Shown piece after piece: positions 9,063-29,400 of a stretch of 64,000 bases of DNA (the first letter of the stretch is position 1; every line of letters begins with the position of its first letter). The position numbers and the translations under genes are program-made. The DNA is from Carpediemonas membranifera BICM (lineage: Eukaryota > Protista > Fornicata), in assembly GCA_019828565.1 (NCBI GenBank), contig JAHDYR010000024.1:194534-258533 (forward strand), in the 5' to 3' direction. The notes under the pieces are model-generated. The model was given only the letters and a program-made list of their open reading frames with translations. It searched no databases and had not been told where the DNA came from.

Positions 9063-9187
9063 TGGCGCTACATCGTCAGTAAGGTTACCTCGGGTAACGG
9101 GCCCGGAGCGGAGGGCGATGTGATAGCCTCACTCCGGGCAAAAGGTGTTTCGCCGGTCAGGCGAGTCACGCAGTTTATGCGGACAGA

Positions 9188-12100
9188 ATGGCGCAAGGTT
9201 CGGATCCGCCGGATCCGACGGCAACACGCTTAGATAAGCTAGAAGCTTCAATCAATTCCATGTCCGAAGCCCTGAACAGGCTTGCTCCTCCGCCTCCGCC
9301 AGAGAAAGAACCTGACGACGAAATGCTCGAAAGTTCCACCGTTGCTAGGTTCAATACCTCCGAATCGTTGGAGGAGGACACGATGGAGGACATAGATGCA
9401 ACTCTGGCAGAGATGGACACCTTCTCGGAGTTACCAAGCAAGAGACCTCTCAAGGCGGAAGCGAAGTGGCTTCAACGCGTTGTCGTGATCACTAGTGCTC
9501 TCCCAGATTCCGCGACGAAACAACGTCTTCTTCTCGAACTACAGGCTCGTAGAATGGTCCTAGACCTCAAAGATGATAACTGGTCCGATGCCACGACCGA
9601 GCTGTTTCAGGACCTCTTCAACAGCACAGAAAGCAAGAGCAGCCGCACCATCGCTTACTGCGCAGCGAAGGCCCGCTCTAAGGGCAGGCGTAAGGACACC
9701 AACGGTAACATGGGGGGTTTCACAAGAAGAAGAGAACATAACAACCTCTGTTCATCAATTCCCGTCGATGAACGCGAGGTGGTGGTTATGGGAAAGGCTC
9801 GGCGCCTCGGACGAGGTGGTCGGCTGGCTCCGTCACGGCGTACCTATCAAGCTAACAGGCACTCCCCCGCCACCCACGCCACAACGGCGCCTGGACCCAC
9901 GGCTCACCCCAAAGCTCGACGAGATGGTCCGACTTGGCGTGATCTCACCCTGTACCAGCGGGCAACTCCGGCACAGTGCCCCGCTCTTCGCGGTTGCAAA
10001 GGGCGAGCACGATGTCCGCCCGGTACACGACCTACGCGACCTCAACGCAATCACTGCGGAGACGCGGGTCTTCCGGCTCTTCGGCCTAAAACGAGCAGTG
10101 CGCAACCTCAAGCGCAACGACTTCATGCTCAAGATCGACTTAGCCTCCGGCTACCACCAGATGGGTGTGGCTCCGACCGACTCCACGCTACTGGGGATCG
10201 TCCTCCCGAACGGGCAGGCGTACAGATACAACACACTAGGGTTCGGCTGGACCGCTGCCCCGTTCGTGTTCCAGTCTACGTCCATCCAGCTAGCAAAGAT
10301 ACTCGCGAACCGCTTCAACGTGACAATAGCGGTGTACCTCGACGACTTTCTCATCTCACATCGGTCACGTCGCCTCCTAGCAGACGCCGCTCCCCAAATA
10401 GTCGCGCTCATGAGGTCGCTGGGAGCTATCCCAGGGCTCAACAAGTGCATCCTAACTCCCACACAACGCCTGGAGTACCTAGGAGTCACCATCAACACAG
10501 CCGCCGAGACACTGCAGATTTCCAAGGACAGAGCCGATCGCTATGCAACATCAATCGAGCAGGCCCTCAGGGCCGGCAGGGTCGATGCAACCGAGTGGCA
10601 ACGCTTACTAGGCCGCCTCTCGTTCTTCGCAAGTACGACACAGTTCGCCAGGCTCCAGCTCAGATCACTCCAGGCCCTACATCCCGCCTCGACGCTTCAC
10701 ATCTCGCAGCAGATGCGTCGCCAGCTCAACAGCTGGCTAGCGCTGCTCAGAGATCGTCCATCCAGACCCTTCGCTCAGGCCAGGGCAGACTGGGAGATCA
10801 AGGACGAACTCCAGCTCTCGGTCGCATCCGACGCGTCCTCCTTCGCGTGGGGCGCCTGCCTATTCAACGGCGACCAGGGCCGCTCGGCTCAAGGCCGCTT
10901 TCCTCCCGAGTTCCGAGACTCTCATATCGGAGTCAAGGAGCTCTACGCGATTGGCCAGGCTATCAAGCTCACCCCAACCCAGCGCACCAGGACCCAACTA
11001 GCTATCTTTTCGGACAACACCGCGGCCATCGCATGGGTCAACCGCCAGGGCTCCCCATGTCTCGCCGACACGGCCATTCGACTCCTGCAGGATATCTTCA
11101 CCACGGCGAACACGAAGAATGTCGATATTCACTGCTTCCATATCGCAGGGCACCTCAATGTCCAGGCGGACCGGCTGTCGAGATTCGCAAAGCTCGATTG
11201 GCACTCACCCCGCGAGGTACTCGAGACGATAATGGCCAAGTGGGGTCCGGCGGAGATAGACGTCACTGCATCTCCGGACAAGAAGCTCGCACTGCCAGGA
11301 TTCGTCAGGAAAGCTTGGTCCCTCGACGATCACGGCTTCCAGCGCTCCTGGACCGGCGCCAGGATCTATCTGGCTCCGCCGACAGCGCTTTTGGGAGCGG
11401 CACATCGTCGTCTGGAGAAGATTCGGACGCCTCAGACCCCGACTACGTCCCCTCGGACGTGGAGGTCAGCGGCAATACTCCTCTTCCCCGATCTCAACTC
11501 ACCCGAAGTCAGAGCGCTGAAACGGCTGTCCCAACACAAGATGTATCTCAGAGTCCACTCCTCGCACATGCTCAACACGGAGCTATCCTGGACCGAGAGG
11601 CAAGGAAAGATCAGAATGATTGCGATGATCGTCAAGACCCGTTCGACGAACTCCTCCGCCACGACAGGCTATCTCACTTCCGAAACGAGTCATCGCGCCG
11701 CTCAGCGGCTGGCTGGGTCTCTAAGTTCGTCCTATCGCGACAGGCAGCCCTCTCCGACGCCGAACAACTCAGAGCATTCCTCCTCGCTGAGGGCGAGACC
11801 ACTGGCCCGCAGAGTATCCACAGAAAGGGCTACTGGATCTGTCAAGCGGCTCCACTCGTCTCCAACTGGCGACCTCCGCCAGAAGCCAGGCAGATCATCA
11901 AGAGTGCGGAGAACGTAGCATCTCTCGACGGCCTAACAGGAGGCGCACTACCGGTGACCAGAGCCCAGGTCCGCAAGGTCGTCGACAGGCGACGCTCCTC
12001 ACCGAAAGCGTTCCAGGTAGCGCTGTTCGCTGCACTTACATTCATCTCAGTCAGCCGGGGAGGCGAGATCTTCGGCCTGACGAGAGGCGACATCTCTTTC

Positions 12101-12544
12101 GATGAACAGGGCAACGCTATGCTCTGGTTCCCCCGCACCAAGACGGCCACGGGCATCCATAAGCTTATTCCTAACAGGTCATGGGACCGCTTCAACCCGG
12201 CAAGAGCCCTCAAGGCCTGGGTCCCAACTGCGACGCGACACAATTCCGACTCGATCTGGCGCATGATCGGTCCATCGGGAGGTATATCACTCACGTGTCC
12301 ACTTGCAGCGTCCACCCTCCGCACATGGATCCACAGCGCCTTCGGCCCGAGCGTTTCATGGCACTCCTTCCGCAAGGGGGCAGCTACTGAGCTGGCAGTG
12401 GCCAACACAAACACGGAGGTCCTCCTTTCAATGGGCACGTGGTCATCTACGAAGAGCATGCTGAGGTACATGGGTAACGGGGTACGCACCCATCCAGGGG
12501 TCCAGGGTCACCTGGCCTCAATTCTACTACAACCACCACTCTAA
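9188..12544 (+). CDS. Gag-like N-terminus and C-terminal tyrosine recombinase in one frame overlapping pol
   Basis: The C-terminus carries the YR catalytic set: SRGGE (R), KT (K), HSFR (HxxR), GTW (W) and RY (Y). Confidence 0.88.
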   Translation: MAQGSDPPDPTATRLDKLEASINSMSEALNRLAPPPPPEKEPDDEMLESSTVARFNTSESLEEDTMEDIDATLAEMDTFSELPSKRPLKAEAKWLQRVVVITSALPDSATKQRLLLELQARRMVLDLKDDNWSDATTELFQDLFNSTESKSSRTIAYCAAKARSKGRRKDTNGNMGGFTRRREHNNLCSSIPVDEREVVVMGKARRLGRGGRLAPSRRTYQANRHSPATHATTAPGPTAHPKARRDGPTWRDLTLYQRATPAQCPALRGCKGRARCPPGTRPTRPQRNHCGDAGLPALRPKTSSAQPQAQRLHAQDRLSLRLPPDGCGSDRLHATGDRPPERAGVQIQHTRVRLDRCPVRVPVYVHPASKDTREPLQRDNSGVPRRLSHLTSVTSPPSRRRSPNSRAHEVAGSYPRAQQVHPNSHTTPGVPRSHHQHSRRDTADFQGQSRSLCNINRAGPQGRQGRCNRVATLTRPPLVLRKYDTVRQAPAQITPGPTSRLDASHLAADASPAQQLASAAQRSSIQTLRSGQGRLGDQGRTPALGRIRRVLLRVGRLPIQRRPGPLGSRPLSSRVPRLSYRSQGALRDWPGYQAHPNPAHQDPTSYLFGQHRGHRMGQPPGLPMSRRHGHSTPAGYLHHGEHEECRYSLLPYRRAPQCPGGPAVEIRKARLALTPRGTRDDNGQVGSGGDRRHCISGQEARTARIRQESLVPRRSRLPALLDRRQDLSGSADSAFGSGTSSSGEDSDASDPDYVPSDVEVSGNTPLPRSQLTRSQSAETAVPTQDVSQSPLLAHAQHGAILDREARKDQNDCDDRQDPFDELLRHDRLSHFRNESSRRSAAGWVSKFVLSRQAALSDAEQLRAFLLAEGETTGPQSIHRKGYWICQAAPLVSNWRPPPEARQIIKSAENVASLDGLTGGALPVTRAQVRKVVDRRRSSPKAFQVALFAALTFISVSRGGEIFGLTRGDISFDEQGNAMLWFPRTKTATGIHKLIPNRSWDRFNPARALKAWVPTATRHNSDSIWRMIGPSGGISLTCPLAASTLRTWIHSAFGPSVSWHSFRKGAATELAVANTNTEVLLSMGTWSSTKSMLRYMGNGVRTHPGVQGHLASILLQPPL
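9573..11918 (+). CDS. Reverse transcriptase - RNase H - methyltransferase-like (DIRS/PAT pol)
   Basis: RT motifs DLASGYHQM and YLDD; RNase H motifs SDAS, KEL, SDN and ADRLSR; MT-like motifs EIDVTAS and SW...IYLAPP. Confidence 0.92.
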   Translation: MITGPMPRPSCFRTSSTAQKARAAAPSLTAQRRPALRAGVRTPTVTWGVSQEEENITTSVHQFPSMNARWWLWERLGASDEVVGWLRHGVPIKLTGTPPPPTPQRRLDPRLTPKLDEMVRLGVISPCTSGQLRHSAPLFAVAKGEHDVRPVHDLRDLNAITAETRVFRLFGLKRAVRNLKRNDFMLKIDLASGYHQMGVAPTDSTLLGIVLPNGQAYRYNTLGFGWTAAPFVFQSTSIQLAKILANRFNVTIAVYLDDFLISHRSRRLLADAAPQIVALMRSLGAIPGLNKCILTPTQRLEYLGVTINTAAETLQISKDRADRYATSIEQALRAGRVDATEWQRLLGRLSFFASTTQFARLQLRSLQALHPASTLHISQQMRRQLNSWLALLRDRPSRPFAQARADWEIKDELQLSVASDASSFAWGACLFNGDQGRSAQGRFPPEFRDSHIGVKELYAIGQAIKLTPTQRTRTQLAIFSDNTAAIAWVNRQGSPCLADTAIRLLQDIFTTANTKNVDIHCFHIAGHLNVQADRLSRFAKLDWHSPREVLETIMAKWGPAEIDVTASPDKKLALPGFVRKAWSLDDHGFQRSWTGARIYLAPPTALLGAAHRRLEKIRTPQTPTTSPRTWRSAAILLFPDLNSPEVRALKRLSQHKMYLRVHSSHMLNTELSWTERQGKIRMIAMIVKTRSTNSSATTGYLTSETSHRAAQRLAGSLSSSYRDRQPSPTPNNSEHSSSLRARPLARRVSTERATGSVKRLHSSPTGDLRQKPGRSSRVRRT

Positions 12545-13070
12545 ATCACGACGGGAGTCGTGGGGCAGTGACGATTAGCACGGTACCGACATTCTTGGAC
12601 GCGAACCCACGAGGGGTTGGTCGGGGGCCCACTTGCGTGCCTGTGGGCCAACCATTGTTAGCACGTTGCCGGCGGGATATCCCCGTTGGTTAATGAAAAG
12701 AATGTCATGAGGCTAGGATAGCTAGCTGGCGCTACATCGTCAGTAAGGTTACCTCGGGTAACGGGCCCGGAGCGGAGGGCGATGTGATAGCCTCACTCCG
12801 GGCAAAAGGTGTTTCGCCGGTCAGGCGAGTCACGCAGTTTATGCGGACAGAATGGCGCAAGGTTCGGATCCGCCGGATCCGACGGCACGGTACCAGTTAC
12901 GACTGGTATACTCCTTCTCCCTCGGTAAGCGGAGAGGACTTCACGTTTAACTTACACTAGCTTCCTCGTTAACATTGTGTAAATTAAGCGCCCCCCCCGT
13001 TGGTTAATGAAAAGAATGTCATGAGGCTAGGATAGCTAGCAATACAGTTCGTCCAAAAAGGCAATAAACG

Positions 13071-13658
13071 ATGCTCCCTCCCGAAATGGAAATGTCGTCA
13101 TTTTCTGTGCCCCAGGCTGATCCTGGAGGCCAGATGGTGACTCGACGACGTACGAGACTCGTATGGCGCGAAAGCGTCTTCGCCGAGGATGTTCGTGCTC
13201 TTCTTACCGAAGTTCATAGCACCTACGCGAAGTTCGTCGACATAAGCCTAATTGACAGACTGTGGTGTGATACGGACACGGTGTTCAACACATTGTGCTC
13301 TGAAACTGCGGTTGTCGAGCTCATGCGCGACGTCCAGAACAAACACATCGTACGCTTTACCGTGAAAGCCCTGAAGGCGATTGCTGACAGCTTCAAGGAC
13401 CTCCTTAAGGCCCACAGCATCACCACACAGGCGCTGCCAACGGCAACTTCGTTGCGTTCTGCAAACACAGCCCCCAAGTCCATTGCGATTATCGCCTGCA
13501 CGATACGAGACAACACTATGCGTCCAGAGACCGCTGCAAATGTCCCTCCCTCTGCAGTAGAGATCGCGACGGACGACGAGGGTCTGTCATCGCAGCCTGT
13601 TGACGAAGAGGTCCAGGCAGACACGGCAGCTCACGTTTCGGCGGTTGGTTTCCCCTAA
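13071..13658 (+). CDS. N-terminal ORF of the CRE-like element (possibly frameshift-joined to the RT ORF)
   Basis: 195-aa ORF, identical in copy 2 (21232..21819), overlapping the RT ORF. Confidence 0.6.
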   Translation: MLPPEMEMSSFSVPQADPGGQMVTRRRTRLVWRESVFAEDVRALLTEVHSTYAKFVDISLIDRLWCDTDTVFNTLCSETAVVELMRDVQNKHIVRFTVKALKAIADSFKDLLKAHSITTQALPTATSLRSANTAPKSIAIIACTIRDNTMRPETAANVPPSAVEIATDDEGLSSQPVDEEVQADTAAHVSAVGFP

Positions 13659-16523
13659 CCCCGCCATCAGCACCTCCCACTACCCCTGCTCATCGACCCG
13701 ATGTCTTCCTTCCCCGGGTCAGGCCTTGTTCCTCGGAAAGATCGCTCCGCCCAAGCGCGGGCGCGAGAAGTTCACACGAGGCCTTATTGAACGATTGAGG
13801 GAGGTGAACAACGCGACAGGTGACGACGCCAAGCGGGCTGAGGCTCTTAAGGTTGTAGACTACCCCAAGACGCTGTACGCACCGCCGTCGGACCGAGGCG
13901 GACGACGCGCTAGCGCGAGCAAGTGGCGTCGGACGCTGAACCTGATTCGCCACGGGTTTGTCTCGAAGGCCGCCACGTTCATGGTAGCCAATGAGACTGA
14001 CCTGACACCGACTGAAATCGACGCTCAACTGCGGGACCTCCAGGTTGGGTTCAACGGGCTTTGTCCCGACGTCCCCATGCGAGACGTCCCCGAGAACCCC
14101 CTGCAGTGTGTCGAAGTTTCCTATAAGACTCTGAAGACCATCCTCAACACACTCAAGTCTGAGGCGGCCCCGGGGCCCTCCGGGCTATCGTTCCTTCACC
14201 TGAAGATCGCCTACAAGACATCAAGGCGCGAACTAGTCCAGGCTCTGCTCCCGCTGGTTCAGGACATCCTGAACGGAGAAGCTTACACTGATGTGTTCAG
14301 TCATTGCATTCTCGTCCCTGTGCCGAAAGGTGAAGGGAAGGTCCGAGGGGTCGCGATCGGCGACTCTATTCGCCGTGTGGCGGCAAAGGCACTCGCCTGG
14401 TCCGTCCGTAAGCGGCTGGTTGACGTCGATCGTGCCCTGAAGGACCAGTTCGGAGTAGGTGAGAAGTGCGGCTTGGAGAGGTTGGGAGAGGAGGTGAGTG
14501 CAGTCTACCGAAGTGGCGGTACAGTGCTCACACTCGACCTTTCCAACGCCTATGGATGCTTGTCGAGGGCCTTCGCCATGAAGGTGGTGGCGGCCTACAT
14601 GCCGGCGCTCATCCCATACCTGTCGACCATGTACCGACGGGGCTTACTTTTCTCTACCTCCGGCATCACCATGAGGTCGGCTGAAGGCATTCACCAAGGG
14701 GACCCGCTCTCGCCAATTCTTTTCAGCTTAGGCGTTAAGCCCATTCTGGACGTCTTGCGCGAGGCTTTCCCTGGGTGGTGCATCCGTGCCTACCAGGATG
14801 ACATTGTAGCCACCACTACCCGCCCGCTACAGTCGCCTGGGGTCGGCCGTGAGGCCAACAATCTCACAGAACTCGCCGCTCAGAAGTTCAACGAGGTTGG
14901 CCTCCGCCTCAACCGTGCCAAGTGCGTGCTAGCCCATAAGGATGTCGTTGACGGCAACACAACTGGTGGCGTCCCACGGAGACGCGATACCAAGCTGGTT
15001 GGTGTTCCAATCGGCTCCGCCACGCACATCATGCGGGAGCTAGGCTCTGCTAACCGCAAGGTTATGGAGCTGCTTGACGCTGCTGCATCGATGGTCTCTG
15101 ACATTGGCGCGGAAGCCGTCGCCCCTGCCCTCCTAGTGACGAAACTGTGTGCCCTCACCAAGTGGGAGCACTTCTTCCGCAATGTTTCGCCGGGCGGGGG
15201 TGACATGTTCGAGTCGCAACTGGACTTCGAACAGCAGAAGGTGGTCCCCGCCATCCTGAAGTTGCTCCAGTCCAGCGCAGAGACTGACAAGGACTTCGCC
15301 GCAAGGCTCTGTCTGCCGGTCAGTCAAGGCGGGCTCGGATTGGCCATGCCCTCTGTTGTGTGGGCCCCAGCCTATCTGGGTGCCGCACGACAACTCATAG
15401 AGCTGAAGGTCGAAAGGCCCGAGGCTCTCATCCAAGACGCACTGCCATGCATCCCGGCTCTCGCCGCGACGCCCAAGGATTGGCCGACATCATATGGCGA
15501 TGTCAGAAAGCTCTCACTCGAGAGCACGCAGAAGAAGTTGGTACGCCTCCTGCAGGATAACATTTCCAGCCAACTGACTGTTTCAGTCGACTCGCCAAAC
15601 GTGATCAGGTCTCTACTCGCGGCTGATCCAGCCGCTATGGGTCGTAACCCCTGTGACGAGGGTGCTGCACCGATGCTTCGCAACCATGTCGGCCTTCCTG
15701 CCTTTGAGACAGGCCACGACGTCTGTCCGCTATGCCTGGCCCGTAGTGTTAACCACCGGTCTGTCCCCTGCTCAGCCGAGCATTCTCTTACCTGTCCCTT
15801 CCTGAGGGAGGGGCTGGGATCGGAGCGGCACGACCAAATTCGCGACACGCTCGCCAAACTGCTGCGCGGGCACCCCTGGCGCGTAAGAGTTGAGCATTGG
15901 CTCGGACGGGGCAGCGAGTGGACTGTGGACCGGACCAAACGGGTCAAGGCGCGGGCGGACCTCCTCTTGACCAGACCGGGCCATACCGAACCCGTTGTGC
16001 TTGACGTAGTGGTGAGCAATCACACGTCTGCATCTATGCGGAGCAAGAAGGAGCAGTACGCCAACTGGAACGTCCGGGTTATTCCCGTGGTCGTTCGCCA
16101 GAGTGGTGGTGTTGGTGCTGTGCATGGGAGAGGATGGACCGATGAGATGCGCGACGTTTTGGGCCTTGATGCCGAAACTGTTGGGCAGATTGCCGACGCG
16201 GTCATGATGGCCTGTATGCGGCAGCAAGTTCATGTGTTCCATGCGTTCATGCGCCAGGCGGATGCTGCGCACCGTCAAGCTGAGGCTAATGGCCTCAACC
16301 ACTAATACTGATGTTGTTTCTGTACTTTGAGCGTGATCTGCGCGTTATTCGCGTTCGCGTTCGTTGTGACTGAGTGGAGAGTCGAAAGGGAGATTTCGGA
16401 GCGAGCAGTGCCTCAAACCCGACATACTGACCACTAGAGTGACGTCTTCGCTGCGCTCAGGCTCGCGAAGCTCGGCTGCGCCTCGCCGCTCGCAATACAG
16501 TTCGTCCAAAAGGCAATAAACGA
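13084..16523 (+). mobile_element. Full-length CRE-like (RLE) non-LTR retrotransposon family 1, copy 1, flanked by the direct 12-mer TGCTCCCTCCCG
   Basis: The 12-mer sits at 13072..13083 and 16524..16535; the element contains ORFs 13071..13658 and 13600..16305. Confidence 0.9.
13600..16305 (+). CDS. Non-LTR reverse transcriptase, CCHC knuckle and restriction-like endonuclease
   Basis: RT motifs APGPSG, LDLSNAY, GIHQGDPLSP and YQDD; GGLGL; knuckle CPLC...HSLTC; endonuclease motifs RHD, RADL...LDVVV and K..QY. Confidence 0.93.
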   Translation: MTKRSRQTRQLTFRRLVSPNPAISTSHYPCSSTRCLPSPGQALFLGKIAPPKRGREKFTRGLIERLREVNNATGDDAKRAEALKVVDYPKTLYAPPSDRGGRRASASKWRRTLNLIRHGFVSKAATFMVANETDLTPTEIDAQLRDLQVGFNGLCPDVPMRDVPENPLQCVEVSYKTLKTILNTLKSEAAPGPSGLSFLHLKIAYKTSRRELVQALLPLVQDILNGEAYTDVFSHCILVPVPKGEGKVRGVAIGDSIRRVAAKALAWSVRKRLVDVDRALKDQFGVGEKCGLERLGEEVSAVYRSGGTVLTLDLSNAYGCLSRAFAMKVVAAYMPALIPYLSTMYRRGLLFSTSGITMRSAEGIHQGDPLSPILFSLGVKPILDVLREAFPGWCIRAYQDDIVATTTRPLQSPGVGREANNLTELAAQKFNEVGLRLNRAKCVLAHKDVVDGNTTGGVPRRRDTKLVGVPIGSATHIMRELGSANRKVMELLDAAASMVSDIGAEAVAPALLVTKLCALTKWEHFFRNVSPGGGDMFESQLDFEQQKVVPAILKLLQSSAETDKDFAARLCLPVSQGGLGLAMPSVVWAPAYLGAARQLIELKVERPEALIQDALPCIPALAATPKDWPTSYGDVRKLSLESTQKKLVRLLQDNISSQLTVSVDSPNVIRSLLAADPAAMGRNPCDEGAAPMLRNHVGLPAFETGHDVCPLCLARSVNHRSVPCSAEHSLTCPFLREGLGSERHDQIRDTLAKLLRGHPWRVRVEHWLGRGSEWTVDRTKRVKARADLLLTRPGHTEPVVLDVVVSNHTSASMRSKKEQYANWNVRVIPVVVRQSGGVGAVHGRGWTDEMRDVLGLDAETVGQIADAVMMACMRQQVHVFHAFMRQADAAHRQAEANGLNH

Positions 16524-16535
16524 TGCTCCCTCCCG

Positions 16536-16656
16536 AAATGGAAATATCGTCATTTTCTGCGCCCCAGGCTGATCCTGGAGGCCAGATGGTGACTCGACGA
16601 CGTACGAGACTCGTATGGCGCGAAAGCGTCTTCGCCGAGGATGTTCGTGCTCTTCT
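16536..16656 (+). mobile_element. 5' stub of a further tandem CRE-like family 1 copy
   Basis: Matches 13084..13205 with two substitutions, then breaks off. Confidence 0.85.
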
Positions 16657-18930
16657 GTGAGCGAGACGTGGCTCTGGCCATACCCGAGGTGCACACCTGG
16701 CCCATGAAAAAGAAGGAGGGGCCAGTCACAGTCTCAAAGCTGAACAGGATCAAGAGCTCGGACCAATGGGAAGAGACTATAAGAGCATGCATGGGCGACC
16801 CAGTGAACAACAGGGGAGCAAAGGCAAGGGACAAAGTGTTCGGGAACGGAGTGTGGAGCGAACTCCAGCGAACCCCATGGACAGAAATAGACATTTGGGA
16901 AGGCCTCACGGCAGGACTACGGGAACTGGCAAAGGTTTACAACAGCTTCAAGGTGGAATAGAAGCATGTCATGAACCCCTGACTCCAGGACCGGGAAGGG
17001 ATGGACAAGGAATCAGCCATGGACCACCCTCGCTGGGTGCTAAGCTCCTGGGATCAGTGAGGAAAGGCCCCACGTATCCCGGTAGCCAGGAACCAAAGCA
17101 AGGGAAGGAACGACTGCAAGGAATTAACAGGAAGGACAGACCAGAAATAAGAAAGAAAGGACATGCAACAAGGACAGAGCAAGGATAAGGTCAAGGAAAT
17201 CCATATTATGGAATGGCTGGCAGTCAAAAGGATAGTCAACTACAGGGACCAGGATATACCAGTCAGAAACAGAGAATGGGGGCGGGGCACGGTTATGTGG
17301 GAAGCTAGGGAGAGAGTGCAGCATCTACTGGAGGGCACCAGAGAGGGAGCCCCTAAACCAGCGCTACTGGATTATGGCATGGAAACGATCAGGAGGGGGT
17401 GGATGAAGCGGTGCAAAAGCCGTACGGCACTAGGACTAATGGAAATCATGGGGACAAGGAAATTAAGCAAGTGTCTGCAAGGTAAGCCTACGGTAGACCG
17501 AAAGGCTGGGAAGGGGGCAAAGCAGGGCGGAATGGAAGAGAATTGTATCCATTGCAGCCAATGTCAGCCCATCCCCATCGTCGGCAGAGAGAGGGGGAGG
17601 GCCCTATGAGAGCCATCACAGAGCTGGCCCAAGGCGCTGACCTGAAGAGAGAAATTAGCAGACTATGCCCCCTATGCTCGGAGGAGTCGGAGGTGAGCCT
17701 GTTCTACAGGATCATTAGGGAAAAAGCCAGGACCAGCAAGGAAGCAGGAAATGATCAGGGGAGTGGGCAGAGGGCCAGAGGCTAGGATCGGCAGCGCACA
17801 TAATCTGTGAATGCCCGGCAGTAGACAGGGGAGAAGCTTGGACAAAGCTGTGGACAGCAGCGAAGCACAAAAACTAAGGACTTGGAAGTAAGGCAGGGCC
17901 CCCAGGGCGAATGGTACCAGGAAAGACCCATCCTAGAATTACAGCAACTAATAATATGGGGCTCGGAGGACATTTGGGAAGGCCTCACGGCAGGACTACG
18001 GGAACTGGCAAAGGTTTACAACAGCTTCAAGGTGGAATAGAAGCATGTCATGAACCCCTGACTCCAGGACCGGGAAGGGATGGACAAGGAATCAGCCATG
18101 GACCACCCTCGCTGGTGCTAAGCTCCTGGGATCAGTGAGGAAAGGCCCCACGTATCCCGGTAGCCAGGAACCAAAAGCAAGGGAAGGAACGACTGCAAGG
18201 AAATAACAGGAAGGACAGACCAGAAATAAGAAAGAAAGGACATGCAACAAGGACAGAGCAAGGATAAGGTCAAGGAAATCCATATTCATATGGTTGCACC
18301 ACTCGTTGGGACCCCAAGGAAACTGCAGGGACTGGCCACGGGGGTCGGAGGGGCACAGGTGCCCCTGCCGCCCTTGTTAACGACATGGGAAACCAAGGAC
18401 ATGTAGTGCAAGCGAAATGTTGTAAGGGGTAACAGGACAACCAGGCCTAGTGCCTGGGGGTACACCACCCATGCCCTGACCCACGCCACCTAACCGGGGT
18501 AGACAGCATGGACTTAGTCACTTTCCCCGCCTTCGGGTAGGCTTCTTAACAGAGTCGAGGGGGCATGGAATTGGGGAACCGGACAGACGAGAGGGTGCCG
18601 TGGCTGAACGGCTCTACAAGGACTGCAGGGAAGCAAGGAGTGTCATAGTCAAGGTTCTGCAGGACGATCCTGCCTGTCAATGCCCCGAGGACAGACCCCC
18701 AGGCTCCCCGGATAGTTGCCGGACTTTCAGGGAGACAGGAAAGCATATTTGCACGGAGATGGCCGCAGGGCCTCTGGGGCGATTGGAATCGGCTTTCCGC
18801 GGAGACAGTAGCACCGAAAGCCCAAGGCAAACGCTGCTGACCAGTTTGCCACGGGAAATAGGCAGTACCCCGGGGCACTCAGCTCCAAGACAACGGGAAA
18901 CAAGCTCAGTCCGGGGTCAGAATCCAAGCA
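16657..18930 (+). pseudogene. Degenerate purine-rich element remnant of unknown class, with an internal ~318-bp duplication (16890..17207 = 17969..18286)
   Basis: Strong A/G skew and fragmented ORFs with CxxC motifs (CIHC, CPLC). The duplication is directly visible; the element class is a guess. Confidence 0.4.
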
Positions 18931-20341
18931 CCATAAATTTCTTTCTTCTTTCTTAACCATTGCCCGTCAAACACGAGCCCTACCTGCCTCAACACCTTCT
19001 TCCATAGACCATCCACTTGACCTTCAAACAGAGGTCGACTGAGTGCCAAAAGCTGCACATGGTGTTTAGTCAACGGCCTATGGCGCACTGTCTTGTCGAA
19101 AGCAGACCGTAGCTTTGACTCAGACTGGCTGGATGTTCCCATTCACGAGCAGGGACACACTCATGATATTTGCATATGTAAGAGATAGCAAAGATCGGAT
19201 TTAGTCTCGCGGTATCTCACGTGGCCCAGAGCAGCGTGCTCCTGGAATCAACAGGGCACAAAACACCCTGCGTATTCCGGTAGCACACCGTTCTGACTCA
19301 TACGTCCGTCTCTGGTTGTCGTATACAGGTCTATTTACGTGTTTGGTGATGGCGCTCCCTTAAATCTGCTTGAACAGCGTGTCGTGGCTGTAAGTATGCT
19401 GCATATGTCTCAGCGAGAAAGGAGTCACCAATCGCGTTCAGCTTTCTTGTTTCTCGCCTGATAAGGCTCGTAATATCGTTCAAGCGTGAATCTATGAAGT
19501 AATGGGACTGAATGGCCTCTATTGCGTCAATTTCTTGCGTAATGGTTGTGGAATGGCCTAGAATAGATGTTGCAGCTGCTTCCAGCTCCTGTTGCATGCT
19601 AAATGCTGTGTTTTTGGATAATTGGTCGTGTTCAGGCATAATTTTTTTCATGCAAAGTGCAGGCTAATACCCGTCCTTAAACTGTGGGATCAGCCGCTGG
19701 GTAAATATACTGAGAAAAAAACATATAGCTGAGTTCACTGTCTTGTGCTGAATACGGTGGCGCCATTTATTTCTCTGAATCGCTAAGTTTTGTCAGCGTT
19801 GACCGCGCACGACCGGTCGTCCTTACGCGATGACACCCAGCCCATCTTGTAGGTCGGGTGGCCATACCTCGCGGCCTTGCTTGCTTTTTCTTTGACGAGC
19901 AATATTCCCTGAGTAATAGCCTCTCCTTTTCTTCAATTCGACTCTAGCCAAGTCAAAAAACAAGAAATCGACCATATCTCAAAATCTAACAGGTAGATTC
20001 ACTCTGAAAGTGATTATGCGCATATGTACCTCCTTTCAACTACTCACATAATCACTATCGTAGTGAATCTACCTGTTAGATTTTCTGTTATTGTCCATTT
20101 TATCGTTTCGTCTTAACCTGCACGGCGAAATGCTCAAACCAGGCAAGGAGTCAGAGCCAGAGCTTCTTTCCATGCTCTACGTACATCATATGGACTCTAA
20201 AGAAGACCTTCGTTTATCTCTAAATAGCTTAAATTTAATGAATACTTCATTTCTGAGCAAGAAATTGTAGATTATCTAGCGTTTTGAGGTCGAAGATAAT
20301 CTAGGGTTTAGCAAAGATAATCTAGGGATGTTGACAGTATG
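18930..20341. mobile_element. Terminal region of a second CAGTATG-ended DNA transposon relative
   Basis: Ends in TTGACAGTATG, preceded by three AGAT(A/T)ATCTAG motifs (20269-20325) and a long hairpin at 19981-20084. Minus-strand ORF pieces are present, and the region is homologous in patches to 7300-8370. Confidence 0.65.
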
Positions 20342-20370
20342 AAGCGGGCCATCTCTAAGGCCCAACGCAA

Positions 20371-21202
20371 CTCAAGGCCTGGGTCCCAACTGCGACGCGA
20401 CACAATTCCGACTCGATCTGGCGCATGATCGGTCCATCGGGAGGTATATCACTCACGTGTCCACTTGCAGCGTCCACCCTCCGCACATGGATCCACAGCG
20501 CCTTCGGCCCGAGCGTTTCATGGCACTCCTTCCGCAAGGGGGCAGCTACTGAGCTGGCAGTGGCCAACACAAACACGGAGGTCCTCCTTTCAATGGGCAC
20601 GTGGTCATCTACGAAGAGCATGCTGAGGTACATGGGTAACGGGGTACGCACCCATCCAGGGGTCCAGGGTCACCTGGCCTCAATTCTACTACAACCACCA
20701 CTCTAAATCACGACGGGAGTCGTGGGGCAGTGACGATTAGCACGGTACCGACATTCTTGGACGCGAACCCACGAGGGGTTGGTCGGGGGGCCCACTTGCG
20801 TGCCTGTGGGCCAACCATTGTTAGCACGTTGCCGGCGGGATATCCCCGTTGGTTAATGAAAAGAATGTCATGAGGCTAGGATAGCTAGCTGGCGCTACAT
20901 CGTCAGTAAGGTTACCTCGGGTAACGGGCCCGGAGCGGAGGGCGATGTGATAGCCTCACTCCGGGCAAAAGGTGTTTCGCCGGTCAGGCGAGTCACGCAG
21001 TTTATGCGGACAGAATGGCGCAAGGTTCGGATCCGCCGGATCCGACGGCACGGTACCAGTTACGACTGGTATACTCCTTCTCCCTCGGTAAGCGGAGAGG
21101 ACTTCACGTTTAACTTACACTAGCTTCCTCGTTAACATTGTGTAAATTAAGCGCCCCCCCGTTGGTTAATGAAAAGAATGTCATGAGGCTAGGATAGCTA
21201 GC
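20371..21202 (+). mobile_element. 3' part (YR C-terminus, B1-A2-B2) of the PAT-type element, second copy
   Basis: Essentially identical to 12209..13040; ORF 20425..20706 equals the YR C-terminus. Confidence 0.92.
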
Positions 21203-21244
21203 AATACAGTTCGTCCAAAAGGCAATAAACGATGCTCCCTCCCG

Positions 21245-24200
21245 AAATGGAAATGTCGTCATTTTCTGTGCCCCAGGCTGATCCTGGAGGCCAGATGGTG
21301 ACTCGACGACGTACGAGACTCGTATGGCGCGAAAGCGTCTTCGCCGAGGATGTTCGTGCTCTTCTTACCGAAGTTCATAGCACCTACGCGAAGTTCGTCG
21401 ACATAAGCCTAATTGACAGACTGTGGTGTGATACGGACACGGTGTTCAACACATTGTGCTCTGAAACTGCGGTTGTCGAGCTCATGCGCGACGTCCAGAA
21501 CAAACACATCGTACGCTTTACCGTGAAAGCCCTGAAGGCGATTGCTGACAGCTTCAAGGACCTCCTTAAGGCCCACAGCATCACCACACAGGCGCTGCCA
21601 ACGGCAACTTCGTTGCGTTCTGCAAACACAGCCCCCAAGTCCATTGCGATTATCGCCTGCACGATACGAGACAACACTATGCGTCCAGAGACCGCTGCAA
21701 ATGTCCCTCCCTCTGCAGTAGAGATCGCGACGGACGACGAGGGTCTGTCATCGCAGCCTGTTGACGAAGAGGTCCAGGCAGACACGGCAGCTCACGTTTC
21801 GGCGGTTGGTTTCCCCTAACCCCGCCATCAGCACCTCCCACTACCCCCTGCTCATCGACCCGATGTCTTCCTTCCCCGGGTCAGGCCTTGTTCCTCGGAA
21901 AGATCGCTCCGCCCAAGCGCGGGCGCGAGAAGTTCACACGAGGCCTTATTGAACGATTGAGGGAGGTGAACAACGCGACAGGTGACGACGCCAAGCGGGC
22001 TGAGGCTCTTAAGGTTGTAGACTACCCCAAGACGCTGTACGCACCGCCGTCGGACCGAGGCGGACGACGCGCTAGCGCGAGCAAGTGGCGTCGGACGCTG
22101 AACCTGATTCGCCACGGGTTTGTCTCGAAGGCCGCCACGTCCATGGTAGCCAATGAGACTGACCTGACACCGACTGAAATCGACGCTCAACTGCGGGACC
22201 TCCAGGTTGGGTTCAACGGGCTTTGTCCCGACGTCCCCATGCGAGACGTCCCCGAGAACCCCCTGCAGTGTGTCGAAGTTTCCTCTAAGACTCTGAAGAC
22301 CATCCTCAACACACTCAAGTCTGAGGCGGCCCCGGGGCCCTCCGGGCTATCGTTCCTTCACCTGAAGATCGCCTACAAGACATCAAGGCGCGAACTAGTC
22401 CAGGCTCTGCTCCCGCTGGTTCAGGACATCCTGAACGGAGAAGCTTACACTGATGTGTTCAGTCATTGCATTCTCGTCCCTGTGCCGAAAGGTGAAGGGA
22501 AGGTCCGAGGGGTCGCGATCGGCGACTCTATTCGCCGTGTGGCGGCAAAGGCACTCGCCTGGTCCGTCCGTAAGCGGCTGGTTGACGTCGATCGTGCCCT
22601 GAAGGACCAGTTCGGAGTAGGTGAGAAGTGCGGCTTGGAGAGGTTGGGAGAGGAGGTGAGTGCAGTCTACCGAAGTGGCGGTACAGTGCTCACACTCGAC
22701 CTTTCCAACGCCTATGGATGCTTGTCGAGGGCCTTCGCCATGAAGGTGGTGGCGGCCTACATGCCGGCGCTCATCCCATACCTGTCGACCATGTACCGAC
22801 GGGGCTTACTTTTCTCTACCTCCGGCATCACCATGAGGTCGGCTGAAGGCATTCACCAAGGGGACCCGCTCTCGCCAATTCTTTTCAGCTTAGGCGTTAA
22901 GCCCATTCTGGACGTCTTGCGCGAGGCTTTCCCTGGGTGGTGCATCCGTGCCTACCAGGATGACATTGTAGCCACCACTACCCGCCCGCTACAGTCGCCT
23001 GGGGTCGGCCGTGAGGCCAACAATCTCACAGAACTCGCCGCTCAGAAGTTCAACGAGGTTGGCCTCCGCCTCAACCGTGCCAAGTGCGTGCTAGCCCATA
23101 AGGATGTCGTTGACGGCAACACAACTGGTGGCGTCCCACGGAGACGCGATACCAAGCTGGTTGGTGTTCCAATCGGCTCCGCCACGCACATCATGCGGGA
23201 GCTAGGCTCTGCTAACCGCAAGGTTATGGAGCTGCTTGACGCTGCTGCATCGATGGTCTCTGACATTGGCGCGGAAGCCGTCGCCCCTGCCCTCCTAGTG
23301 ACGAAACTGTGTGCCCTCACCAAGTGGGAGCACTTCTTCCGCAATGTTTCGCCGGGCGGGGGTGACATGTTCGAGTCGCAACTGGACTTCGAACAGCAGA
23401 AGGTGGTCCCCGCCATCCTGAAGCTGCTCCAGTCCAGCGCAGAGACTGACAAGGACTTCGCCGCAAGGCTCTGTCTGCCGGTCAGTCAAGGCGGGCTCGG
23501 ATTGGCCATGCCCTCTGTTGTGTGGGCCCCAGCCTATCTGGGTGCCGCACGACAACTCATAGAGCTGAAGGTCGAAAGGCCCGAGGCTCTCATCCAAGAC
23601 GCACTGCCATGCATCCCGGCTCTCGCCGCGACGCCCAAGGATTGGCCGACATCATATGGCGATGTCAGAAAGCTCTCACTCGAGAGCACGCAGAAGAAGT
23701 TGGTACGCCTCCTGCAGGATAACATTTCCAGCCAACTGACTGTTTCAGTCGACTCGCCAAACGTGATCAGGTCTCTACTCGCGGCTGATCCAGCCGCTAT
23801 GGGTCGTAACCCCTGTGACGAGGGTGCTGCACCGATGCTTCGCAACCATGTCGGCCTTCCTGCCTTTGGAGACAGGCCACGACGTCTGTCCGCTATGCCT
23901 GGCCCGTAGTGTTAACCACCGGTCTGTCCCCTGCTCAGCCGAGCATTCTCTTACCTGTCCCTTCCTGAGGGAGGGGCTGGGATCGGAGCGGCACGACCAA
24001 ATTCGCGACACGCTCGCCAAACTGCTGCGCGGGCACCCCTGGCGCGTAAGAGTTGAGCATTGGCTCGGACGGGGCAGCGAGTGGACTGTGGACCGGACCA
24101 AACGGGTCAAGGCGCGGGCGGACCTCCTCTTGACCAGACCGGGCCATACCGAACCCGTTGTGCTTGACGTAGTGGTGAGCAATCACGCGTCTGCATCTAT

Positions 24201-24686
24201 GCGGAGCAAGAAGGAGCAGTACGCCAACTGGAACGTCCGGGTTATTCCCGTGGTCGTTCGCCAGAGTGGTGGTGTTGGTGCTGTGCATGGGAGAGGATGG
24301 ACCGATGAGATGCGCGACGTTTTGGGCCTTGATGCCGAAACTGTTGGGCAGATTGCCGACGCGGTCATGATGGCCTGTATGCGGCAGCAAGTTCATGTGT
24401 TCCATGCGTTCATGCGCCAGGCGGATGCTGCGCACCGTCAAGCTGAGGCTAATGGCCTCAACCACTAATACTGATGTTGTTTCTGTACTTTGAGCGTGAT
24501 CTGCGCGTTATTCGCGTTCGCGTTCGTTGTGACTGAGTGGAGAGTCGAAAGGGAGATTTCGGAGCGAGCAGTGCCTCAAACCCGACATACTGACCACTAG
24601 AGTGACGTCTTCGCTGCGCTCAGGCTCGCGAAGCTCGGCTGCGCCTCGCCGCTCGCAATACAGTTCGTCCAAAAGGCAATAAACGA
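21245..24686 (+). mobile_element. CRE-like non-LTR family 1, copy 2 (two single-base frameshifts)
   Basis: ORFs 21232..21819, 21888..23909 and 23815..24468 match copy 1; the 12-mer sits at 21233..21244 and 24687..24698. Confidence 0.92.
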
Positions 24687-24738
24687 TGCTCCCTCCCGAA
24701 ATGGAAATATCGTCATTTTCTGCGCCCCAGGCTGATCC

Positions 24739-26337
24739 AGAGACGTTACCGACGGCAACACCTCGGGAGGCGTCCCAAGAAGACGCAGCCTAAACCTCGT
24801 GGGCGTTCCGGTTGGGTCCGCTGCTCATGCGATGGGTGAGTTGGCCAAGGTCAACAGTCGCGTGATGCAACTCCTTAACGCTGCCGGAGAGATGGTGGCC
24901 AAGGAGGGGCCGGAGGCAACTGCCCCTGCGTTGATCATTGCGAAGTATTGTGCGCTCACAAAGTGGGAGCACTTCTTCCGTAACGTTCCCCCCGCAACGG
25001 GTGGAGTCGGCAACGGTCTCTACGAGGCTGAGCTCGGATTTGAGAAGAAAGAGGCGGTCCCGGCCATCCTCCGAATCCTGTCGAGCGAGGCTGAGGTCGA
25101 TGACGACTTTGCTCTCCGCCTGAGTATGCCGGTCGAAAGACGCGGGCTTGCGCTGGCAATGCCATCAGTCGTGTGGGCTCCCGCGTTCCTCGCGGCCACG
25201 AGACAACTGGCAGGGCTGGGTGTTACACGCTCACCTGACAGCGTGACGGGTGCCATCAAGTGTCTCCCGCCCCAGCTCAACACGCCGTCGAACTGGCCTA
25301 GTGGCTTGGACGATGTGAAGGCTCTTGACGCCGACCACACGCAGAAGAACTTGGTTCGCCTCGTTGAGGAATCTATTGCCACCAAGCTCTCTGTGAGTGC
25401 CGCCGTCTCGCCCAACGTCGTTCGGTCGTTCATGATGGTCGACCCGACCTCTCTTGGGCGCTCGGTAACCGATGCCGCTGTTGCCCCCATCTTCCGCAAT
25501 CACCTGGGCCTCCCCGCATTCACGCCCGGATTTGACGTCTGCCCTCTCTGCAGGGCACGCACCGTGAACCACCAGTCCGTTGTGTGCAACGCTACTCACA
25601 CCCTGTGCTGCCCATGCCTCCGTGGAGGCCTGGACGACGAGCGTCACAACGCTATCAAGGACGGGCTGGTGAGAGACCTGAAGGGTTATGGCTGGAGAGT
25701 CCAGTCCGAGGTGTGGTTGAACAAGGCCAGTGAGTGGACCATTGACCGGACCAAGCCTATGAAGGCGCGGGCGGACATCCTCCTCACGAAACCTGGCGTG
25801 AAGGCAATCGTCATTGACAACGTCGTCAGCAACCACGTGTCTCAGGCCATGACGAGCAAGCGCGCCCAGTACTCCAACTGGGACGTCAAGCTCATACCCG
25901 CGGTGACGCTTCACAACGGTGACGTTGGAAGAGTGCACGGAAGGGGCTGGACGGACGATTTGCGCGATGAACTTGGTCTTAAGGCTGAGCAGGTCCGCGA
26001 GATGGCTGATAACGCTTTCTTGGCGTGCATGAGAGGGCAAGTGCACACATATGCAGCGTTCATCAAGCAATGCGACGCAGCACATGCTGCAGCAGAGGAT
26101 TTGGGCCTCTCCCACTAATTGTTACTCAATTCTGATATTGGTGTAGCAATCGGCTCGTGCAGAGCGCTTCAGAGTGTTCTTGTTGGTTTTGTTGACTCGC
26201 CAGCGACTCACTGGATGGAGCGACGGAGGACCCCGACGCACCCCATAGCCTCAAACTGCTTCGCTGCGCTCAGGCTCGCGAAGCTCGGCTGCGCCTCGCC
26301 GCTCGCTAGACAGTTTGTCGTTGATTACATAAAAGTT
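24739..26337 (+). mobile_element. 5'-truncated CRE-like non-LTR family 2 (thumb, CCHC and RLE; ORF 24799..26118)
   Basis: Collinear but diverged homologue of the family 1 C-terminal half (CALTKWEHFFRNV, CPLC..H..C, RHN, KARADI). It ends directly at the tRNA. Confidence 0.92.
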
Positions 26338-26410
26338 TGCTCCCTCCCGGATTCGAACCGAGGACCTTGTGATTACTAATCACACGCTCTACCAACTGAG
26401 CTAAAGGAGC
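26338..26410 (-). tRNA. tRNA-Thr (anticodon AGT)
   Basis: 73-nt cloverleaf: GCTCCTT/AGGGAGC acceptor stem, GCTC-AGTTGGTA-GAGC D arm, TGTGA-TTAGTAA-TCACA anticodon arm, CTCGG-TTCGAAT-CCGGG T arm. A TTTT run follows a few nt downstream. Confidence 0.96.
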
Positions 26411-29400
26411 TCATGAGACGTCAGCTCCGGCGTGAGATAATGGAGCATGGGCGATGGATCTGCCTGATTCGATTTATTCGAGCCGAACGAATCGGGATCG
26501 AATCAATTACGGCCAGATGGCTGAAGAAACCGAGAACAACACCGGGGACCGCACGCCTGAAGCAGAGAAGATCCCAGATCCGCAGAAGCGCATCAACGAA
26601 CTAACAGGCGAGTTATTGACGCTTCGAGATTTAATGTCGCTGGAGTGGCGCCACCCGGACTCACTAGCCATGCGTAACGAGTCCGAATGGCTGCAGATGC
26701 TCTACAGGGACATCGTCCTCCACCCGAGCTGGACAACCGAGACGATCAAGCTTCAGCTAATGCTCCGTCATGAGCTTCTCCTCATTAAGGACATCAATGG
26801 CTTTCACTACGCCGACGCAGTCAAGGACTACGTCAGAGCCCGACGTTCCAGGATCCGTGATTCCGAGAGCCTCACCGTCCTCATCGCAGAGGCCCGCTCC
26901 AGTGCCAGAGTCGCCCCCAAGAGCGATAAGCGCCCCAGAAAAAAACTAATTGTGCAAGACCATCAATCAACCGAACCACCACTCCCCACAACCCGTCGAG
27001 CGGGTTCTCTCCGCCACTCAGTGGCCGCGTGGCGGCGCTTGGGAGCGCCATCCGACGTGGTCTCTTGGGTTGGCGACGGCATACCCATCGAACTGACACA
27101 ACAACCGAGCAATCCTCGAATATTCCATCTCCCAGAGAAGGACTTAGCCAAGCTCGATCCGCTGGTGCGCGAAATGCTCTCATCGGGTGCCATACACCGC
27201 GTCTCATCGCCACCGAAGCTCACATGTCCTCTCTTTCCAGTCCCGAAGGGTACAGACAAATGGAGAGCAGTCCACAACCTCATACCGCTCAACAAGGTCT
27301 CCAAAGAGCGCCGTACGTTCCGCTTGTTCGGTGCCAAGAGAGCAGTTTTAAGCCTTGCGCCAGGAGACATGATGATGTCGCTAGATCTCCATGCAGGCTA
27401 CCACCACGTGTCCATTCACCCATCATCGCAGTCCCTCCTAGGCTTTTATTCACCGCGGCGTCCACTATCAGTTCACAGTCCTCCCATTCGGATGGTCCGC
27501 GGCGCCATTCTACTTCCAGAAGATCATGATTACCGTAGCGAAGATTATCAAGCGCCATTGCCGCGGTGTAGGAGTTGCCGTCTATCTGGACGACCTTCTA
27601 TTCTTCGGGAAGAAGAAGGCCCTTCTGCGCGAGCGCCAGCGCCTCCTGGACATCATGAATCAGCTAGGCTTTATCATCAACCACGACAAGTCAGTCCTAG
27701 AGCCCACCACAGTCCTGACATACCTCGGCATGCGCATCGACTCAGCTGCTCGGGTCATTTCCCTAGACTCGAAGAAGCGCAGCAGATACCGCCAATTGGT
27801 CGAGAGTGCGCTGATAGAAGGCAATATGAGCAACAAGAGGTGGCAATCCCTCATCGGGAAGCTATCCTTCGCATCTCTGTGCTTCCCCGACGGCCGCGCA
27901 TGGCTGAGACCTCTTCAGACAGCCACCGAGACGGAGAAAGGCTTTACGAAAGCCGTCCTCAAGGCCCTATCGTACTGGAAGCAACTGCTGAGCAGCGAAG
28001 ATCATCCTCCCCGCTCCTTCGACTCCCTGATCAGCATGTGGGGCGCAAGCCCGGCAATCGACATCCACATCCAGTCGGACGCCTCAGAAAAGGGCTTAGC
28101 TGCCATTATCAGGGACGGCTGCAAGCAGACGATCGTATCCTCCTCCGTCTCCCCCAACAGCCCGCTCCAGAACGAGTCCATTGCGGTGAAAGAGTTCTTT
28201 GCGGCGACGAACGCCGTGGAGACGCTCCTTCCACATCTAACGGACAGGGAGATCACCGTATTCATCGACAACAGCAACGCCTGCGCCTGGTTGAACAAGC
28301 AGGGATCAACGCGAGCCCCGCCGATGATCCAGGACGCTTGTCTCACCCTCTTTTCCCGCTTGGCCGCCTGCCAGATCACACTGAGAGCCCAGCACGTCAG
28401 CGGGCACCTCAATGTCTCCGCAGATGCTCTGTCGAGATACCAGCGACTGGAATGGCGGACACCACGAGGGATCCTCGCTGCCATACTGGAGGAGTGGGGC
28501 CCTCTCGAGGTCGACGTGACTGGTGGGAGGGACAAGGAGTTACTACTTCCCGGCTTCGTCGAGCGTTCGCTCACGCTGGCCGAGAGCGGCATGAGCTCGG
28601 AGTGGCGCAGCAAGAGAGTCTTCGCAGCACCACCATACGCCCTTCTTCCAGCCGTAGCCAACCGACTGGCCCTCATTCGCGCCTCACCAGCCTCACATCC
28701 GAGGCATACCAAGTCTGCAGTGGTCGTGGTGATGCCCGACGTCCAGTCCGAGGCGGTACGCCGCATCAAGGGCCTCTCCCCCTTCAAGAGAACGTTCAGG
28801 GTCTACGCGGAGGACATGAAGGACTCAGAGCTCCAGAACATCCTCGTGGGGGAAAAGCCGCGGCTCCTCGCCGTCTTCGTGCCGACGACGCCGCTTTCAA
28901 CGCAGTACTAGGTCTAGACGAGCTCAAAGGCTACGTGGCAACGACCAGGCGTGACACGGCGGGTGTCGTCTCCCAGTTCCTGACCTTCCGAGAGGCCAAC
29001 CCGGCATCGGACCGCGACATATTCCTGGCGTGGCTCGCTCGCGAGGCTGAGCTAGTAGGCCCAGACCGTCTGGCGCACCGGGGCTCGCTGGTGGTAAGGT
29101 TTGCACCCCTGGTATCAACGTGGGCACCCCCAGCTGCTCAAAAGGCATTCATCACCGAAGCGAAGCGCGCTACAGTCCCCAGGCCGCAACGCAAGGTCCC
29201 AGTGCGGGCTGCACGCATCCACCGCCTGATCCCCAAACTCGCCGGCCGCGACGAGGAGTTCCACCAAGCCTTCTTATTCGGCGTCGTTGCCTACGCAACA
29301 ATGTCGAGGCGCAGTGAGATCCTACCCCTCACTCCTCGGGATATCAGGGTGAAAGCAGGACTCGGCGTCTCTATCACCATCGACTCCACCAAGACAGGGC

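Follow-up and report, generated by a model that had tools for sequence, protein, structure and literature searches.

The stretch analysed here (hereafter the window) comprises 64,000 nt of contig JAHDYR010000024.1 (positions 194,534-258,533) in the assembly GCA_019828565.1 of the fornicate protist Carpediemonas membranifera BICM. ARAGORN predicts a single tRNA gene in it, an intact tRNA-Thr(AGT) on the reverse strand. Against the 3' end of this gene, and antisense to it, lie retrotransposons of two families, which we term A and A', together with several other mobile elements that have broken into them (Table 1).

The full-length family A element of the window is 3440 nt long and has two open reading frames (ORFs): ORF1 (13086-13658), of ~190 amino acids, and ORF2 (13600-16305), of ~900 amino acids, the latter encoding a reverse transcriptase (RT), a CCHC motif and a restriction-like endonuclease. 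The element has no poly(A), its tail terminating in ...AATAAACGA. Family A' is represented in the window by an internally deleted copy, in which 40 nt of the 5' end common to both families are followed by A' sequence from about residue 447 of ORF2 through the 3' tail (...ACATAAAAGTT); a complete copy of 3433 nt is found on another contig, C68. The two families have ~56% amino-acid identity over the C-terminal half of ORF2, their first 54 nt are identical, and in the 3' untranslated region (UTR) some 61 nt of GC-rich sequence, which contain a 48-nt motif, are 95% identical. Two diverged families thus occupy one site in the same antisense orientation, as an earlier note made from the letters of this DNA had it.

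The boundaries of these elements are marked by the 12-mer TGCTCCCTCCCG, exact copies of which occur at 13072, 16524, 21233, 24687 and 26338, all on the forward strand; at one mismatch or fewer there are 10 matches in the window as against 0.38 expected from shuffles. The last 12 nt of the tRNA (26338-26349) are the reverse complement of this 12-mer and constitute its proximal copy. The ~31 nt ahead of each 12-mer match the family of the upstream copy, with one sequence found after A bodies and another after A' bodies. Hence, these nucleotides are the tail of the element rather than a tRNA trailer, and it is the last base of the element that adjoins the 12-mer and, at the end of the array, nt 73 of the tRNA.

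The earlier note had reported these 12-mer positions and the match to the tRNA correctly, and had read the five as element boundaries in a head-to-tail array. All five are present, but when the window is compared with itself, 12209-16575 matches 20371-24738 at 99.8% identity over 4370 nt, a nested DIRS-like element included; consequently, the junctions at 13072 and 21233, and those at 16524 and 24687, are copies of one another, and three junctions in the window are independent. The duplicate block holds the 3' part of the DIRS-like element, an A tail (21203-21232), the 12-mers at 21233-21244 and 24687-24698 and, between these, a second A copy (21245-24686) whose reading frame is disrupted by short indels. 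The copies do stack head to tail, but the span is interrupted by the DIRS-like element, DNA-transposon ends, a fragment and the deleted A' copy, and it arose in part by DNA duplication.

Table 1. Features at and beside the tRNA-Thr(AGT) gene, in window coordinates
Feature	Position	Strand	Evidence
Family A 3' fragment (A positions ~3124-3422)	8764-9062	+	self-comparison, family alignment
Nested DIRS/Ngaro-like retroelement, outside the tRNA-targeting family	9063-13040	+	RT ORF, recombinase match, split repeats
Remainder (31 nt) of the family A tail broken by the DIRS-like element	13041-13071	+	
12-bp target-site duplication, reverse complement of tRNA-Thr nt 62-73	13072-13083	+	
Full-length family A element, 3440 nt	13084-16523	+	ORFs, RT/CCHC/restriction-like endonuclease
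12-bp duplication	16524-16535	+	exact 12-mer match
Opening 121 nt of another family A copy	16536-16656	+	
DNA-level duplicate (99.8%) of 12209-16575	20371-24738	+	
Internally deleted family A' copy, adjoining the tRNA directly	24699-26337	+	
Intact tRNA-Thr(AGT), the target	26338-26410	-	ARAGORN

The 12-bp target-site duplication at tRNA-Thr genes

The assembly searched comprises 24.2 Mb in 69 contigs, and its arrays were sampled rather than read end to end. All five tRNA-Thr(AGT) genes, which are identical, and both tRNA-Thr(CGT) genes directly abut the 3' end of an A or A' element; these seven occupied loci are separate and have different 5' flanks. At each of them the same geometry recurs: the copies are antisense to the tRNA-Thr(AGU or CGU) gene, the last base of the element touches nt 73, and the last 12 bp of the tRNA are repeated on the 5' side of the copy. 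The pattern TGCTCCCTYCCG has 78 copies in the genome versus 6 for a control pattern. The exact 12-mer stands directly after ~58 of the 60 complete A or A' 3' ends, the two exceptions being variants of it, one to be read as 11 nt or as G>A and the other a hybrid of 16 nt.

A survey of 54 distinct junctions with their flanks revealed an element tail ahead of the 12-mer in every case (54/54), followed by a full 5' end in 39, by the tRNA in seven and by a truncated copy in eight. The truncated copies have eight different internal start points and each is still positioned behind a 12-mer, which therefore cannot be the element's own 5' end. Further, tRNA-Thr(CGT) ends in a one-base variant of the 12-mer, and the tRNA-proximal junctions at its locus on C68 carry precisely this variant, TGCTCCCTTCCG, in one case ahead of a truncated copy; the exact variant occurs in none of the junctions of the five AGT arrays. 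The 3' junctions are precise and the 5' junctions variable (with starts of AAATGG, AAAATGG or ATGG), this being the polarity expected of target-primed reverse transcription. Together, the occupancy of the tRNA genes, the 3' ends, the truncated copies and the locus-specific variant show that the 12-mer stems from the 3' end of the tRNA through a target-site duplication of 12 bp, as had been proposed from the window.

Within an array, another origin of the 12-mer would look the same: were it the element's own 5' or 3' end, matching the tRNA by chance and without any duplication, an array would be a tandem repeat of element plus 12-mer, and the 12-mer would equally be found at every unit junction. 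The AGT-type 12-mer is also borne by some full-length copies that lie at CGT-type loci or close to them, as such an origin would allow. However, the eight truncation points rule out a 5' end, the variant at tRNA-Thr(CGT) a fixed 3' end, and the 12-mer of a related family at tRNA-Met (family M, below) is another one, in keeping with the target of that family. An element-borne 12-mer is thereby largely refuted, and we give it next to no weight.

The genome-wide survey of flanks also bears on the target itself. Nine chance copies of the 12-mer, five at unique sites and four in one gene family, lie without any insertion in unrelated, mostly coding DNA; as these are empty and 7/7 tRNA-Thr genes are occupied, recognition must extend past the 12-mer. 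The regeneration of both tRNA and target that the earlier note had envisaged is hence borne out for the tRNA, which stays intact, but the bare 12-mer that is rebuilt with it is not a sufficient target. As to the check proposed there, whether copies elsewhere are flanked by tRNA-Thr 3' ends, this holds at the seven genes, and the 12-mer stands after ~58/60 of the 3' ends; some arrays have no tRNA in the DNA read. One limited search pattern found no tRNA-Thr(TGT) gene, from which its absence does not follow.

Several observations weigh against reading the arrays as the product of repeated insertion at tRNA-Thr. There is no empty tRNA-Thr site in the genome, and hence a pre-insertion allele is never seen. 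The far ends of arrays are not readable, running into an assembly gap (C19), a contig end (C3) or, in the window, a DNA transposon. At the CGT locus on C68 the distal junctions (26008 and 29456) are of the AGT type, and an orphan array (C1:53-56 kb) mixes AGT and CGT types of the 12-mer. A 16-nt junction, TGCTCCCTCCCTTCCG, which looks like an out-of-register join of an AGT-type and a CGT-type 12-mer, lies inside an AGT-type array (C1:541400-541520). In several arrays (C54, C61, C8 and C19:28-36 kb) the stretches read contain no tRNA. At least one unit of the window array arose through DNA-level duplication and not through repeated insertion. Finally, the ORF1/ORF2 split varies with homopolymer length among copies, which leaves their coding integrity uncertain. 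The junctions that fit poorly need either RNA-borne 12-mers or exchange between arrays: a full-length RNA could bring along the upstream 12-mer of its donor, its 5' end being joined by annealing to the 12 nt of the target; alternatively, near-identical arrays may have exchanged sequence.

A rival account holds that true insertions were few and that DNA-level processes (unequal crossing-over, segmental duplication, exchange between arrays) account for most of the growth of the stacks. The 4.37-kb duplicate of the window with its nested DIRS-like element fits this, as do the recurrence on C68 of a DIRS-like element within an element tail, the orphan arrays without a tRNA, the arrays of mixed 12-mer type, and some 5' flanks of the tRNA that recur at more than one locus. 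Duplication of a fixed unit would not, however, yield A, A', truncated and internally deleted copies interleaved with one another, each with its own 12-mer; moreover, the seven occupied tRNA loci are separate and differ in their 5' flanks. We therefore hold it unlikely that the stacks grew mainly in this way, and favor insertion at tRNA-Thr with a 12-bp duplication as their principal source.

Older junctions of tail, 12-mer and truncated copy, diverged to ~87-94% identity, are also present away from tRNAs (C1:1396150-1396450, C14 and C4:535447-535578), those on C14 having 9/12 nt of the 12-mer left. These look like relics of old arrays displaced by rearrangement. In addition, one copy (C1:605180-605460) has an A-type 3' UTR body and an A'-type tail, the switch falling inside the common 48-nt motif, which suggests recombination or template switching in that motif.

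Element proteins and the sister family at tRNA-Met

ORF2 matches the Pfam RVT_1 profile (E 1.5e-13), and a family profile search recovered R2 (E 1e-21) ahead of LINE-1 (E 9e-9), with a second aligned stretch that covers the CCHC motif and a D...D...K nuclease motif. The latter belong to the C-terminus of ORF2, where CPLC...H...C is followed by RADLLL...LDVVV...K, the signature of a PD-(D/E)XK-type nuclease that is kept in family M. The AlphaFold model has a mean predicted local distance difference test score (pLDDT) of 68.7, with good values in the RT and for residues 740-890, and the nuclease region is modelled as an alpha/beta domain (pLDDT ~80-88). The top seven hits of a fold search with this model were R2 structures (E 5e-20 to 1e-16), aligned over nearly the full length, with LINE-1 next (1e-12). 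Pfam detects neither an AP-endonuclease (apurinic/apyrimidinic endonuclease) domain in the element proteins nor a zinc finger, and inspection of ORF1 and of the first 200 residues of ORF2 revealed no zinc-finger or Myb motif. Together with precise 3' junctions, variable or truncated 5' ends and the lack of terminal repeats, which form the footprint left by target-primed reverse transcription, these predictions identify A and A' as site-specific retrotransposons of the non-LTR type (lacking long terminal repeats) with an R2-like protein that combines an RT, a CCHC motif and a putative restriction-like endonuclease. The earlier note had called them CRE-like, a possible clade placement; fold and profile group the protein with endonuclease-bearing elements of the R2 type, and the target is the 3' end of tRNA-Thr and not the spliced-leader gene or telomeric repeat of the CRE clade.

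The nearest relatives in sequence, by word-index, exhaustive HMMER and cluster look-ups, are metagenomic or unannotated proteins, and the Atlas neighbor cluster of the element protein includes members from Euglenozoa, which is a hint only. The contigs of three relatives (P0006, P0002 and P0154), being short or breaking off in the 3' UTR, yielded neither a tRNA nor any other RNA gene of Rfam. Relatives carry one ORF of 1100-1141 amino acids, to whose N-terminus ORF1 has no similarity. Among copies of A and A', C- and A-runs vary by a single base, and the reading frame shifts with them (e.g. at window positions 13640-13660). This suggests assembly errors in repeats, and the two-ORF layout may itself be assembly noise. 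A programmed frameshift between ORF1 and ORF2 was considered and rejected as unsupported, the homopolymer lengths at these spots differing between copies.

As for the RNA, the 3' UTRs of A and A' fold no better than shuffles (z 0.3-0.5), and only a small hairpin in the common 48-nt motif recurs. The 5' end of the element matches the tRNA body at 13 of its first 27 nt (p ~0.01), a match that fades by 61 nt; it might be a case of tRNA mimicry, which is unproven.

A related family, M, with an element of ~3742 nt, resembles A with 43% amino-acid identity over the RT region (E 1e-130) and 32% over the nuclease region. It too is antisense, its 3' end lying against the last base of a tRNA-Met(CAT) gene (C44:85841-85914). 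The last 12 nt of this tRNA (TCACTGGGGGCA in the tRNA sense) recur 3742 nt further on and are followed by a second M tail, so that at least two copies are stacked. An M tail is found at 4/4 tRNA-Met genes of that sequence. This third family, with the same geometry at all four tRNA-Met genes, is new here. The tails of A, A' and M all have a run of three to four T from position +4 after the tRNA, as do the natural tRNA trailers of this genome, which suggests that the element tail may serve as the terminator for transcription of the tRNA by RNA polymerase III (Pol III).

The choice of target might in principle be made by tethering to the Pol III machinery, as in the TRE and Ty3 elements, and not by an endonuclease that reads DNA. 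The insufficiency of the bare 12-mer, an N-terminal protein region in which no zinc-finger or Myb motif is visible, and the clustering of other transposons at tRNA genes of this genome are all compatible with tethering. In contrast, A and A' occur solely at tRNA-Thr(AGT/CGT) and M solely at tRNA-Met, none being present at the tRNA-Ala, Phe, Lys, Val and Glu genes seen in the genome sequence examined; moreover, nucleotide-exact insertion with a fixed 12-bp stagger is typical of sequence-specific elements with a restriction-like endonuclease and not of distance-based tethering. Hence, we consider tethering quite improbable and sequence reading by the endonuclease the better account.

Another related RT family is arranged in tandem with a spacing of ~3.98 kb at C39:757-813 kb, C24:285-340 kb, C44:12-27 kb and C7:403-407 kb.

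Proposed mechanism and known target-specific elements

The best overall explanation, to which we assign a probability of about 0.85, is that A and A' are R2-like, tRNA-Thr-specific non-LTR elements that insert with a 12-bp duplication and stack upon one another. The endonuclease would nick the tRNA-sense strand exactly after nt 73, and the resulting 3'-OH would prime reverse transcription from the 3' end of the poly(A)-less element RNA. Cleavage of the second strand would follow in the T-stem, 12 bp into the tRNA, and fill-in would generate the 12-bp duplication while keeping a complete tRNA gene. The intact tRNA could be struck again, giving rise to head-to-tail stacks with the youngest copy probably adjoining the tRNA. 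Recognition would need more of the tRNA than the 12-mer, and Pol III, in transcribing the tRNA, would terminate at a T-run provided by the tail. The upstream 12-mer is probably part of full-length RNAs and may aid the joining of the 5' end by annealing.

These elements are a non-destructive variation of a known habit of target-specific retrotransposons and not a new kind of element. The premise of the earlier note, that tRNA-linked targeting is known from AP-endonuclease elements and Ty3, was incomplete: tRNA-specific elements with a restriction-like endonuclease have been described, namely NeSL-1_TV (tRNA-Pro, Trichomonas), LIN15_SM (tRNA-Arg) and LIN25_SM (tRNA-Glu) (Kojima & Jurka, 2015; PMC4640811). 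These have the same type of endonuclease and use one tRNA species each, and NeSL-1_TV comes from another metamonad. In the S6 Fig of that paper, the planarian tRNA-Arg family (LIN15_SM by the main text) lies within the body of the tRNA, and the gene resumes past the 3' end of the element. Going by that figure, LIN15_SM splits its gene, whereas the Carpediemonas elements lie antisense at the exact 3' end of a complete one. Dada DNA transposons, which are specific for tRNA and small nuclear RNA genes (PMC8869645), resemble them in the sequence-specific use of multicopy small RNA genes but are cut-and-paste elements that insert inside the gene. Our literature search turned up no publication that deals with tRNA-Thr targeting or with these Carpediemonas elements.

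The closest parallel in structure and profile is R2, in which a CCHC motif and a PD-(D/E)XK-type nuclease likewise come after the RT, which lacks poly(A) as well, and which has the same precise 3' and variable 5' junctions, the same 5' truncations and a multicopy RNA gene as its sole target. However, R2 splits and inactivates the 28S gene, whereas the elements described here sit at the 3' boundary of the tRNA and the 12-bp duplication keeps the gene whole; R2 also has N-terminal zinc-finger and Myb domains that are not seen in A and A'. The CRE1/CRE2, SLACS and CZAR elements are similar in being early-branching, in their restriction-like endonuclease, in their protist hosts and in using a small multicopy RNA gene, and their target-site duplication consists of gene sequence; they differ in that the targeted spliced-leader gene is disrupted. 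TRE5 and TRE3 of Dictyostelium and Ty3 of yeast likewise find a safe haven by tRNA genes, integrating without harm in a compact genome. Unlike A and A', these (with an AP-type endonuclease and an integrase, respectively) are placed at a distance from any tRNA gene that is set by Pol III factors and not at a single exact bond of one tRNA species.

It is possible, though slightly short of an even chance, that Carpediemonas hosts a whole R2-like radiation in which each lineage has been retargeted to the boundary of one tRNA, with a stagger of ~12 bp that rebuilds the gene and tails in charge of Pol III termination. If so, element sequence follows on each gene copy for these tRNAs, all of which must function nonetheless; the elements would amount to a natural, re-usable and non-destructive landing-pad system; and specificity would have been switched between tRNAs, such that a comparison of sister families could dissect how this type of endonuclease reads its target. 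The Thr and Met families, with the same geometry but different sequences read, offer that comparison both for target choice and for the 12-bp stagger. Site-specific elements of the R2 type are under development for gene insertion, and R2 destroys its ribosomal DNA target. Its structural relatives described here appear from their sequence to cut at the exact end of the tRNA and to rebuild the gene, so that the target would survive and be reusable. Every gene found for tRNA-Thr(AGU/CGU) and for the tRNA-Met that M targets can hold a retrotransposon without loss of the tRNA set. Any application would be bounded by a target sequence that is that of this protist's tRNAs.

Other mobile elements around the tRNA genes

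The nested DIRS/Ngaro-like element of the window has an RT ORF at 9573-11918, and an overlapping ORF (9188-12544) weakly matches a tyrosine recombinase. Its direct repeats are split: 9063-9223 equals 12727-12887, and ~12682-12726 equals 12996-13040. It breaks the tail of the 3' fragment of family A after GCTCGC; the left edge of the same fragment is severed by the DNA-transposon terminus CAGTATG (8757-8763). The 121-nt opening fragment is interrupted at 16657 by unrelated repeat DNA that closes with the same terminus at 20341. Such termini, of one DNA-transposon family (8757-8763 and 20335-20341), interrupt an A copy and a DIRS-like copy, and the DNA at 16657-20341 belongs either to this family or to another repeat.

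A second DIRS-like element (26454-29582), with an RT/RNase H and a weak match to Dam methyltransferase, starts 44 bp from the 5' end of tRNA-Thr, which hence has mobile elements on both sides. Elsewhere, including on C68, DIRS/Ngaro-like elements recur within the last 30-45 nt of tRNA-linked element tails, beside GCTCGC- or TAGC-like sites, and they are also present 15-40 bp downstream of tRNA-Ala genes. They may prefer tRNA-distal flanks on their own account.

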